A stretch of DNA of 62,934 nucleotides, counting the filler, from Lenisia limosa (Eukaryota > Protista > Breviatea), in the NCBI GenBank assembly GCA_001655205.1. It is 14 parts of 14 records of this genome, joined end to end, with 100 filler letters (N's around TTAATTAATTAA, not from the genome) between each part and the next. Parts side by side here need not be neighbours in the genome. Positions count along the whole stretch, not along the records: positions 27,957 to 32,055 come from LPNZ01007938.1; 13 more parts are not named here. One strand, 5' to 3'. The notes beneath the pieces were generated by a model. That model was not told where the DNA came from and ran no database searches. It was given only the letters and a program-made list of their open reading frames with translations. Shown piece after piece: positions 2,921 through 31,260 of this stretch. A program made the position numbers and the translations under genes. Numbering within the stretch: the first letter of the stretch is position 1; each line of letters starts with the position of its first letter.

Positions 2921-3631
2921 TTATGAACAGGTTATTTTGATGGCCCACTTGAAGGAATCTGCATCTCCATTACTGTTTGGGACTGCTTCTTCTTCGTCGT
3001 TATCGTCATCCTGCTCAACAGCTACACTTTGTACATTTTCTGTTCTTGCTTGTGTTCCTTGTACACAAGCGTCATTAATTTCGTCGTTTTCTTTCTTATT
3101 TTCATCTTCTTCCACTTCCACTTCTTCTTCCACCTCCTTCTTTTCTTCTTCTTTAACCTCTTCTTCTTCCTTCTTTTCTTCTTCTTCCACCTCTTCTACT
3201 TCCTTCTTTTCTTCTTCTTCCACCTCTTCTTCCTTCTTCTTTTCTTCTTCTTCCACCTCTTCTTCTTCCTTCTTTTCTTCTTCTTCCACCTCTTCTTCTT
3301 TAACCTCTTCTTCTTTAACCTCTTCTTTCTTCTTTTCTTCTTCTTCCACCTTCTTTTCTTCTTCTTTAACCTCTTCTTTCTCCTTCTTTTCTTCTTCTTC
3401 TTCGCTCTTATCATCCACTTCTTCTTCTTCTTTTGTATCTTCCTTCTCTTCTGCCACTCCTTTGCCTTCTTCTTCTCTCTTTTCATCTTCACCTTCTTCC
3501 AGCTTGGCTATTCCTGAAGAAGGGGTACCAGGCTCAACATCACTCGAGTCCTCATTCGGTGATATTGTCTGAGTGATCACATCTCTTAGACTTAATGCAC
3601 CAGAAGGGGAGTAAGGCCACCAGAAAGACAG
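2921..3631 (-). CDS. Glu/Lys-rich low-complexity exon of an unidentified protein
   Basis: Long open frame of E/K/V repeats (EEEVEEEEKK) with an acceptor tttcaaag at about 3632. A probable downstream exon VKVEEDFQKLREINEALEALKDMDDDL lies near 2760-2865. Confidence 0.6.
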   Translation of the reverse strand: MSFWWPYSPSGALSLRDVITQTISPNEDSSDVEPGTPSSGIAKLEEGEDEKREEEGKGVAEEKEDTKEEEEVDDKSEEEEEKKEKEEVKEEEKKVEEEEKKKEEVKEEEVKEEEVEEEEKKEEEEVEEEEKKKEEEVEEEEKKEVEEVEEEEKKEEEEVKEEEKKEVEEEVEVEEDENKKENDEINDACVQGTQARTENVQSVAVEQDDDNDEEEAVPNSNGDADSFKWAIKITCS

Positions 3632-27774: not shown

Positions 27775-28398
27775 GTGGGAGGGAGGCAGATGTTAATGCA
27801 TATTAATGCATATTAATGCAAATGATCAACTATGATAGTATATAAAATATTAATTTNNNNNNNNNNNNNNNNNNNNNNNNNNNNNNNNNNNNNNNNNNNN
27901 TTAATTAATTAANNNNNNNNNNNNNNNNNNNNNNNNNNNNNNNNNNNNNNNNNNNNATTAGTCAGTTGTCATATATCATGGGAGGTATTAATAGAATGGG
28001 GTGTGGGGGGGGGGTTGGTTGGTCGGATGTCTGCTGTTAGTCAATAATATGCCTATTATAAAAAACATTTAACATTTGTTCCTAAACAAGGTACTTTTAG
28101 AAGTCATTAGATCAAAGGGGATGAAGATGAGAAACGGCTGTTTTTCAACTTTTAAAACCTTGCTTCCCAATTAGGCAAGTAAAGAACTTTCTGGTTATGG
28201 GGTCCACATATCAAAAACGTCACAAAAGTTATGTTACTTCCGCAAACTTTTTCTAGAATCTAAGAAAAGGGTAAAAAGCAACCACAGCAAGATTTTGGAC
28301 CTGTCTTTCAGGGAGGTTCTTTTCTTCCAATGGAAAATGATTGGGTTTTAAAGGGGTTTTGGAACAGTTCTTTCAAATATTTCTTATTATTTTTTTAG

Positions 28399-28685
28399 TA
28401 TATGACTGATGGTATGCTTTTAAGGGAATTCTTGACTGAACCTGATCTTGTTTGTTAACAAAATCTTAATTTCTGTCTTCGTATAGTGTAATGATCATTG
28501 ATGAAGCTCATGAAAGAACACTACATACTGACGTTTTATTTGGATTAGTCAAAGACATTGCACGTTTCAGGTTTTTTTTAATTTATCGAGTTACTTTGAC
28601 CAGATATTAAATTAATTATCTCATCAGCAACTCTTGATGCAAAGAAGTTTTCTATTTATTTTGATAATGCTCCTATTTTCAATGG
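28399..28685 (+). CDS. DHX16: DEAH-box splicing helicase (DHX16/Prp2-like) internal fragment; possibly a truncated copy
   Basis: Exons 28399-28449, 28476-28570 and 28599-28685 give [77 protein letters not shown] (motifs Ib, II, III) with no stops. It ends at a 10-N gap with a convergent gene 27 nt beyond. Confidence 0.9.
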
Positions 28686-28712
28686 NNNNNNNNNNATTAT
28701 AGACATATTTTC

Positions 28713-29790
28713 CTATCCTTTCCGGGCCTGCTTATGATATTTTAAATGCTGATCTGACCATTTTAAGGGTTTTGGGGGGTCAGGTTTTTGGTTTCTAACG
28801 TCATTAGAAGTTTTTAAGGGGTCTGAGATGTCATAGTACAATTTGCTTTTCGAGAATGCGTCAAAGAATACAAAATTATGTAGCATTGAAAACGTAAATA
28901 AAGAACTGATTACCCCCCCCCCCCCNNNNNNNNNNNNNNNNNNNNNNNNNNNNNNNNNNNNNNNNNNNNNNNNNNNNNNNNNNNNNNNNNNNNNNNNNNN
29001 NNNNNNNCAGCCGTGAATATGACGCATAGTTGAAGGTGCTTTGTGTGAATACCCTTGGCGATGAACGTGGGGATGGTTGATTCACAATCCAACATTAATC
29101 AAGTCGTAAGCTTACAACAGAATTAGCGGACTCAATGTTGTTGTGTTCGACAAGGACAGGACGGACTGAAATGGGGAGAAGAGACTGCTCCTTCTGATGG
29201 CACTTGTTGAAAAAAGGAGTCAACTTCTTGCCGTTCTTCTTGTGCACACCAGTCAGATGATCGGGGATCTCGGAGAAGCAGGTCATGGCGATCTTGACAT
29301 CACCCTTGGCATTCTTATAGATGTTTCTAAATACAGTCTGGAACTAGTTGCCGAGATCCTTGTCTATAATGCATCAGATTACCACCACCATTCAAGATAA
29401 CTCTGACATAGCCCCTTAAAAAGAAAACAAATATTTGCATTATGAAGCCTACTCTTACCAGAGAGAAGCAGAGAAGGTGTTGATGCGGTGTCTTTTGGTC
29501 TTTCAAGGTGATAACAATTTAAACAAAATGGAGACATGTGCAAAAACATTTCAAAAACAAAAATTCTCCATCATACTTGGTGGGAGGGAGAGGGGCAAGG
29601 TGAAGTCTTTGACGGAAGTTGAGATTCTGGGCGCGGAGATCTTTCTTAACGGAAGGCGGCGTTTCTGGTTGAGTGACTTTTCACGATCAAAGGGGGCGTA
29701 TTCTGTAAAAGGATCAGCAAGAGAAAGGGGAGGCAGAACTGGGGTTGGAGTTTTCTTGATCTCTTTCTGATCATTTTAGGAGGAAAAGGG
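28713..29790 (-). CDS. Unidentified multi-exon gene, 3' part
   Basis: Open exons QKEIKKTPTPVLPPLSLADPFTEYAPF..., FQTVFRNIYKNAKGDVKIAMTCFSEIPDHL...ESANSV, GIHTKHLQLCVIFTA and a terminal ...KWSDQHLKYHKQARKG-TAG; some junctions are ambiguous. Confidence 0.5.
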
Positions 29791-30276
29791 AAACATGAAA
29801 GAACTTTCATTTGGTTCAGAAACTCATCCGTGCTACAGAATTCGATCTGATAAACAGATGGAAGGCTCTAGAGGTTATTTTAATGATAGACAAGCTTACA
29901 ACTTGAAACTTAATGCAGCATTTGGCGCATCGCTGCCCGTTTACGATCTTTCGTGAACGTCCACGCTCAATTTTGCAAGTACAAGAGTATCTGAATAGAA
30001 GGGCAAAACGACATGAAATATTTTACTTTCTCTTTCTGGACTGCTGTTCCATTAGATCAAGTACTCTTTTAACTTGAGTTGTTCCACTCATTATTTTTAA
30101 CATTTTTTTTTTTATTTTTTTTCTTATTTATATCTACACTGGTACATGTTGACTATATCTCGTATGCTGGGGAGGCACGCAGAAAGCTGTGTGCACAGAG
30201 NNNNNNNNNNNNNNNNNNNNNNNNNNNNNNNNNNNNNNNNNNNNNNNNNNNNNNNNNNNNNNNNNNNNNNNNNNNT

Positions 30277-30373: not shown

Positions 30374-31260
30374 GTTAAAACCGCGAACATGATTAAAACC
30401 GCGAACAAAAAGGAGGCTTCTCTTTCAATTTTTGAGCCAATACGCTCCTTATTTACGCCTCTTTCGCATTTTTTGCCAATTATCGCCCGAAACACTCCTT
30501 TATACAGGGTTTTATTCATCACCTTCATGGAACTTCAATTTTTCATGCGAAATACATTAAAAACACTGATTATGGGCCAAGAATGCCCCTGCGATAAAGT
30601 GAAGACATTCTTGCACCATCAGATTTAATTTTTTTTCCACTCTTGAGTAACCTAGAGGCATTTAAGTAGAGAATACGAGACAGATTGGGCAAAAAATGAG
30701 CATAGATTACCCATAAATGGGCGGATATATGATAGAAGATGTTAATAAATCAAGCGAATTTGACTCTTACCTTTTGTGCCATTCCAAACGGTAAATGGGT
30801 TATTGACGCAGTATATACCTTAATCAGACGTCTAATTTGTCCAATGGCTCTCCATTATAGAGACTGAACAAGAAAAATTCTTGAAAAAACCGTTACAAAA
30901 GTTGACTTAAATACCTCAAAATCACTACATTTTCTCCAAAAATGGACTTCAGATTCGAATTCTCCTTAAAAAATCGCGTTTCTATGGTGGGGCACTTTAA
31001 TAGGCTCAAAATGCTATTATTCTGAAAGAGGGGGGTTTCAAAAAATATTTTCGCGTAAAGGAAACTGGATGACCCCGGCCGGATTCGATTCTGATCAAAA
31101 GATCTTATTTTTCGATTTTTTTTATCTCCTCATTTTTTTTCTTTTTGCTCAAAATTTCTTTGTTTTGATATTGTTGATAGCACTAAAACGGGTGTTATTG
31201 AAGCGATTTATGTCGAATTTTGACTTGTTCGCGGTTTTAATCATGTTCGCGGTTTTAAAC
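30374..31260. mobile_element. Non-autonomous DNA transposon of about 890 bp with 35-36 bp TIRs
   Basis: Left end GTTAAAACCGCGAACATGATTAAAACCGCGAACAA (30374-30408) and its reverse complement at 31225-31260. Each TIR has an internal direct repeat, the element is flanked by (TA)n-rich sequence, and no intact ORF lies inside. Confidence 0.85.

Follow-up and report, generated by a model that had tools for sequence, protein, structure and literature searches.

The window, that is, the whole stretch of DNA that was analyzed, comprises 62,934 nucleotides (filler included) from the Lenisia limosa assembly GCA_001655205.1, and all positions given here count along it. One of its 14 parts, LPNZ01007938.1 (27957-32055), is a gap-ridden scaffold interrupted by runs of N at 28686-28695, 28926-29007, and 30201-30275, which are edged by G/C homopolymers. 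The G- and C-homopolymer runs at 27998-28016 and 28908-28925 abut contig ends or N gaps, as in short-read single-cell style scaffolds, and the scaffold joins around the first contig may not represent true adjacency. This first contig (27957-28685) bears three plus-strand coding blocks of the DEAH-box helicase DHX16/Prp2, separated by two short inserts (Table 1). When joined, the three blocks form an open frame of 77 codons with no stops and no indels, which includes SSYSV..DEAHERT..ARFR and ends with APIFN. The piece has a G+C content of approximately 35% (range 26-47%), with 32% in the exons as compared to the lower values of the two inserts.

Table 1. Features of the DHX16/Prp2 fragment, in positions of the window
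Feature	Position	Strand	Basis and remarks
T-rich tract with terminal TAG, resembling the canonical 3' end of an intron located upstream	28384-28398	+	Sequence; in-frame TAG directly before Tyr 28399
Exon block 1, 17 residues	28399-28449	+	17/17 identical to L001
Insert/intron 1, 26 nt, GTTTGT...CTTAAT..TTTCTG, phase 0	28450-28475	+	Sequence and frames; 23% GC
Exon block 2, 31 residues plus AG of an Arg codon; helicase motif II, DEAH	28476-28570	+	Human DHX16 513-542, E 4e-12
AG 11 nt 3' of the first TG (TATAG, then T)	28485-28486	+	Use would cause a frameshift; coincides with the shared intron site Y-S(AG then Y)-V
Insert/intron 2, 28 nt, GTTTTT...GTTAC.TTTG, phase 2 within an Arg codon (AG,A)	28571-28598	+	21% GC
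Exon block 3, from (R), 28 residues, then (G)	28599-28685	+	Ended by the 10-N scaffold gap
AG 5 nt 3' of the second TG (TTG,ACCAG)	28602-28603	+	Use would lead to a stop

The identity of the gene was supported by several comparisons. Exon block 2 alone aligned without gaps to human DHX16, with DHX8 following at an E value of 1.5e-7. Human DHX16 ranked ahead of DHX8, DHX15, Prp16, and Prp22 for this block and was also the best match among solved structures. The nearest relative of the 77 residues, with 92% identity, was a DHX16 fragment from a TARA-Oceans metagenome (P0001, encoded by contig L001), and hundreds of further sequences shared 84-89% identity, the named metagenomic matches among them being annotated as DHX16. 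Using tblastx against L001 and against L002, a complete metagenomic DHX16 gene, we obtained E values of 3e-36 and 7e-29, respectively, with alignments on exactly the three blocks of Table 1 and on nothing else in the piece. While a full DHX16/Prp2 helicase has approximately 1000 residues, only 77 were found in the piece.

The fragment is isolated. The 5' end of the apparent intron before exon block 1, as well as the upstream exon, lie outside the contig, and DHX16-like coding sequence was absent from 27957-28398 according to both reading frames and tblastx. The latter found no upstream exon in these 442 nt and no downstream exon in the whole piece. Two brown-alga-like fragments (P0126 and P0147) also presented acceptor read-through just before YMTDG, and an intron follows APIF(R) in L001 and in another DHX16 contig, L006, approximately where exon block 3 ends.

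Convergent on the DHX16 fragment is a GC3-rich ORF on the minus strand (29095-29720), of which the region 29095-29334 weakly resembled the Pfam SGS domain (E 0.02-0.17). This ORF had no real homologues among 1.84 billion representatives, no match in the Atlas, and one weak match in a full HMMER search. Judging by sequence pattern only, its apparent introns are ordinary GT..AG introns of about 46-83 nt (for example, GTAAGA..TTTAAG, 29458-29413, 46 nt). Since the SGS match and the homologues were too weak, the ORF could not be used to calibrate the introns of this genome by homology. An in-frame TAG at 29346-29344 may mark the end of an intron, or it may be a codon that is defective or has been reassigned. 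Further along the piece, we observed a non-autonomous DNA-transposon-like element of approximately 884 bp (30375-31258) with (TA)n-rich flanks and perfect 34-nt terminal inverted repeats (30375-30408 and 31225-31258), each made of two 18-nt tandem units.

Boundaries of the two inserts

The initial annotation had proposed that the reading frame is restored only by removing both inserts, and that each of them starts with GT and ends with TG. Indeed, their removal left 77 uninterrupted codons, the homology fell exactly on the three blocks, and both ends were of the form YTG (TTTCTG and ACTTTG). Neither insert length is a multiple of three and retention leads to early stops, with an in-frame TAA at 28456-28458 for insert 1 and a frameshift to TAA for insert 2. 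The branch-like motif described just upstream of each end was likewise present, as CTTAAT in insert 1 (A located 6 nt before the insert end) and as GTTAC in insert 2 (A located 5 nt before the insert end).

We checked by hand every nearby GT or GC donor and AG acceptor, and the outcome agreed with the earlier statement that GT-AG and GC-AG alternatives fail, as all of them produced stops or the loss of invariant residues. Splicing to the AG at 28485-28486 reached a stop five codons on, the AGs at 28589-28590 and 28602-28603 also led to a stop, and the sole phase-keeping GC donor removed sixteen invariant residues. Some freedom exists in the exact placement of the inserts. In terms of DNA sequence, a shift of insert 2 by -1 (GG..TT) is possible. 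In terms of the protein, any 26-nt window starting from 28446 to 28451 fits insert 1, with CTG in place of CTT still encoding Leu and a shift of +1 giving the consensus Ala; RNA alone is able to decide between CTT and CTG at this junction. As each shifted placement would have two non-canonical ends, GT..TG is the reading that requires the fewest assumptions.

Compared with the signals of U2-type introns, both inserts have the 5' GT and neither has the 3' AG. U12-type introns carry a 5' RTATCCTT and the branch site TCCTTAAC. This type was rejected, as the 5' ends are GTTTGT and GTTTTT and only a partial TTGTTAAC occurs in intron 1. An Rfam search for other intron-like classes returned no match. 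Folding for a structure that would pair the intron ends, as in euglenid introns, gave z-scores of about 0, with neither insert folding significantly. Of note, insert 1 holds a perfect 12-nt palindrome (TTTGTTAACAAA, 28451-28462), for which folding indicated no significant stability.

Shared intron positions, exon constraint, and RNA content

To place the inserts among known DHX16 genes, their sites were compared with intron positions in other eukaryotes. L002 has an intron at the exact site and phase of insert 2, within the Arg codon after ARF (GC..AG, 68 nt; junction TTT AG, gcaagt..tctag, G CCT). L005 (NCBI assembly, 61% GC) and L006 (Logan contig) harbor GT..AG introns of approximately 300 nt at the same site and in the same phase (junction AG, gtgggt..cag, G CC), and several further fragments presented ARFR followed by donor-like read-through. 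According to these three independent DHX16 genes, insert 2 occupies an intron position common to distant eukaryotes, a finding that speaks against an artefact or an insertion at random. The L002 intron, located at 3164-3232 of that sequence, has a non-canonical GC donor (GCAAGT..TCTAG, ~68 nt), and the genome of L002 is AT-rich (36% GC), like the window.

None of the other DHX16 genes compared had an intron at the exact site of insert 1. The nearest shared site is 11 nt downstream, in the Ser codon of Y-S-V, where L005, L006, and many animal-like contigs have an intron. The stretch from 28476 to 28486, TCTTCGTATAG, encodes the conserved SSYS, also resembles a pyrimidine tract plus TAG, and ends at this shared intron site. 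Because the 11 nt before it encode conserved SSYS in frame, the AG at 28486 is not productively usable. The 11-nt offset could be the trace of an intron relocation or a coincidence of the TAT AGT codons. We also searched JGI metagenomes using degenerate DNA patterns with an insert of 15-48 nt at either site, both patterns having been validated on the window, and obtained 0 matches.

The comparison with L001 revealed 40 codon differences that were synonymous only and 7 that were non-synonymous, with 56% of third positions differing and 10% of first and second positions. In a three-taxon comparison (window, L001, and L002), the non-synonymous branch estimates were 4 for the window, and 3 and 6 for the other two. 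This substitution pattern indicates that the exons are under strong purifying selection, without excess change on the branch of the window. The initial annotation had considered neutral decay at both neighboring acceptors to be unlikely, and our estimate points in the same direction. Two random substitutions in the 287 nt would both fall on the acceptor A's with a probability of approximately 2e-5. Together with exons free of decay, this low chance suggests that the TG ends function or that they came from a functioning parent copy.

Two sequencing runs from one study and organism contain the region, namely X1, whose kind is not recorded, and X2, a polyA RNA run. When words were sampled from 27957-28685, the Logan contigs of X1 contained 0.96 of them, and for 28399-28685 this share was 1.00. 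T is found at 28474 and 28597 in both the assembly and the X1 contigs, which are not independent of each other if X1 is the assembly's own data, as it may be. X2 contained 0.20 of the 70 words sampled from 27957-28685 and 0.54 of the 24 words sampled from 28399-28685. The 31-mers lying wholly within the three exon blocks number 143, corresponding to 0.205 of 699 and 0.556 of 257 for the same two intervals. The X2 shares equal this exon-only expectation and thus fit a spliced mRNA lacking the inserts and the upstream sequence. They exclude the presence of the whole region unspliced in X2, and they fit as well one unspliced fragment of ~180 nt (roughly 28385-28568). One of the 14 X2 words was located upstream of 28399, and contigs of this kind can tell that a word is present but not that it is absent. 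A spliced protein product of this organism did not turn up in any of three protein searches, which covered lengths of 25-222 aa, and a look-up of the exact products of the window ORFs gave no match.

Candidate TG acceptors and competing explanations

On balance, we find it rather probable that both inserts are true spliceosomal introns of very small size, located in a DHX16/Prp2 gene that is expressed and with YTG in place of YAG as 3' splice sites. This reading is based on four observations, as the site of intron 2 is shared with other DHX16 genes, the exons are under constraint, neutral decay of the acceptors is implausible, and the share of words in RNA is that predicted by the exons. The suggestion of real non-canonical introns made in the initial annotation gains indirect support from these same four observations, while splicing exactly at the TG, and the way in which this site would be chosen, is what we infer from them. 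In both introns, the 5' GT would be used normally. The branch-like A is located no more than 5-6 nt before the 3' end, and joining would take place at the first dinucleotide ending in G that follows the branch point. Joining at TG would yield an in-frame mRNA, the predicted joints being CCTGATCTT,TCTTCGTAT for 28449>28476 and CGTTTCAG,ACCAGATAT for 28570>28599. The AGs located 11 and 5 nt downstream might help early recognition or might compete as unproductive sites. Indeed, each TG is followed by a frame-breaking AG, at 11 nt (CTG,TCTTCGTATAG) and at 5 nt (TTG,ACCAG), and a competition between productive TG and unproductive AG could be envisaged, weakly so as AGs within these distances are expected by chance at 0.44 and 0.21.

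Another explanation is that these downstream AGs (28486 and 28603) are used mostly or only, giving frameshifted, non-productive transcripts in which TG would be a minor site at most, either because the locus is dead or because it acts as a regulated unproductive-splicing switch. The sequence TTTCTGTCTTCGTATAG does have the look of a textbook acceptor, with a pyrimidine tract followed by TAG, and its end coincides exactly with an intron site common to many eukaryotes, and the human TG acceptor needs a nearby AG and is never constitutive (PMC2374985). Moreover, splicing at the downstream AGs would predict an X2 word share of 0.49, within sampling error of the observed 0.54. However, the 11 nt that would be skipped (TCT TCG TAT AG) encode the conserved (A/S)SYS, which is unlikely to occur by chance in the tail of an intron, purifying selection is seen in the frame defined by TG, and the proximity of the two AGs is itself within chance expectation. 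We therefore regard exclusive or predominant use of the AGs as unlikely.

The fragment might also be a non-functional partial copy (an unprocessed pseudogene or a fragment) whose acceptors decayed from AG to TG, with a functional DHX16 elsewhere in the genome being the source of the RNA words. Such a copy would be expected to look like this one, with only 77 codons placed between non-coding sequence, gaps of the scaffold, and an unrelated gene in convergent orientation, but short contigs and misjoined scaffolds explain this isolation equally well. The exons also have 0 stops, 0 indels, and no excess of non-synonymous change. As the RNA shares approximately all of the exon-internal words, the exons must be identical or nearly so to those of an expressed copy, and at such a low divergence the probability that both acceptor A's were hit, and both changed to T, is approximately 3e-6 to 2e-5. 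A decayed partial copy is, in our opinion, quite unlikely.

We further considered that the inserts are IESs of a ciliate-like germline genome, removed from the DNA and not by RNA splicing. Their length of 26-28 nt and AT-richness are like those of short IESs, the RNA would lack the inserts either way, the data look like single-cell DNA plus RNA, and the neighboring ORF has a possible in-frame TAG. Nevertheless, the inserts have no TA boundary and no pointer repeat, with 0 nt (insert 1) and 1 nt (insert 2) of shared boundary bases, and the deletions that a pointer would imply (TCTT and ATCTT) do not keep the frame. The site of insert 2 is that of conserved spliceosomal introns, GT is found at the start of both inserts, and exon 1 is preceded by a normal acceptor with a T tract and TAG, all of which makes DNA elimination very improbable. 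Finally, an error in sequencing or assembly, with A as the true base at 28474 and 28597, would suit a fragmentary assembly with homopolymer-flanked N gaps but is hardly credible, since the X1 Logan contigs reproduce 100% of the sampled words in 28399-28685 (with the caveat that X1 may be the assembly's own data) and two identical A>T errors at equivalent positions next to clean exons are very unlikely.

If the inserts are TG-spliced introns, a broader proposal would be that YTG is, in this lineage, a regular constitutive 3' splice site of tiny introns with the branch point 5-6 nt from the end, chosen by distance and not by AG, and that TG/AG competition in DHX16 could tune the level of a spliceosome-activating helicase. 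We consider this proposal doubtful. Prp2/DHX16 has its role in catalytic activation, ahead of the first step of splicing, while proofreading of the 3' splice site is the task of Prp16/Prp22 (DHX38/DHX8). For this reason, the identity of the gene as DHX16 adds no specific link to the autoregulatory splicing sensor that had been suggested for it, the sole hint of which is the pairing of each TG with a frame-breaking AG.

Few signals in eukaryotic gene expression are as invariant as the 3' AG. If true, two neighboring TG-spliced introns in an essential and highly constrained gene would be a natural test of the tolerance of the second step for U at position -2, and would show how very short branch-to-acceptor distances relax the choice of site. 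On the practical side, gene prediction with an enforced GT-AG rule would disrupt this gene and similar ones in the genome.

Comparison with known systems

The rarity of TG acceptors, stressed in the initial annotation, agrees with the literature, yet such sites have been documented both in human TG-AG tandems and in the small AT-rich introns of Micromonas. For U2-type introns of 36 human genes, an alternative TG acceptor has been described that has a pyrimidine at -3 and forms a TG-AG tandem with an AG at a distance of up to 28 nt (Szafranski et al., 2007, PMC2374985). According to the model proposed for these tandems, early recognition is aided by the AG, and the catalytic step may then select the TG; TG is never the sole acceptor, and AG>TG mutations abolish the use of a site (PMC2374985). 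The two inserts are similar to these tandems in their YTG ends (CTG and TTG), their GT donor, and an AG a few nt downstream (11 and 5 nt), with close human parallels in CTG,TTTCTCCTCAG (ALAS1, 11 nt) and TTG,AGCAG (5 nt) (PMC2374985). They differ in that the human TG is always alternative and found in introns of normal length, whereas here TG must be the productive site of two neighboring introns of 26-28 nt for which the AG forms are out of frame.

A second parallel comes from the BOC1 of Micromonas, where short (<75 nt), AT-rich introns without strong signals are found, 34 of which have TG/CG acceptors that were mostly validated by ESTs (Verhelst et al., 2013, PMC3879977). These acceptors apparently stand alone, and the introner elements IE-B and IE-D also use GT-TG (PMC3879977). 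With 26 and 28 nt, 23 and 21% GC, and TG acceptors, both inserts have the length, GC content, and acceptor of BOC1 introns (<75 nt, <43% GC, TG/CG acceptor). However, the BOC1 introns belong to a low-GC region of one outlier chromosome of a GC-rich green alga, whereas the piece studied here has approximately 35% GC throughout and its introns are shorter. Indeed, with 26-47% GC along the piece and 32% in its exons, the locus does not form a low-GC island like the mamiellophycean outlier chromosome.

In terms of size, the closest counterparts are the tiny introns of ciliates, which measure 20-33 nt in Paramecium and 21-29 nt in Nyctotherus, have lengths that are not multiples of three, and cause a premature stop on retention (PMC2633312). 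The inserts share their length class, AT-richness, non-3n length, and stop if retained, while the apparent introns of the neighboring gene are longer (46-83 nt). As for a ciliate-type stop reassignment, we counted 0 in-frame TAA/TAG in the 77 codons and one doubtful TAG in the weak SGS-like ORF. We know of no report of Paramecium or Nyctotherus tiny introns ending with TG. The type of acceptor proposed for this DHX16 gene is rare but already documented, and what would be unusual here is its combination with very small introns and its role as the productive site.
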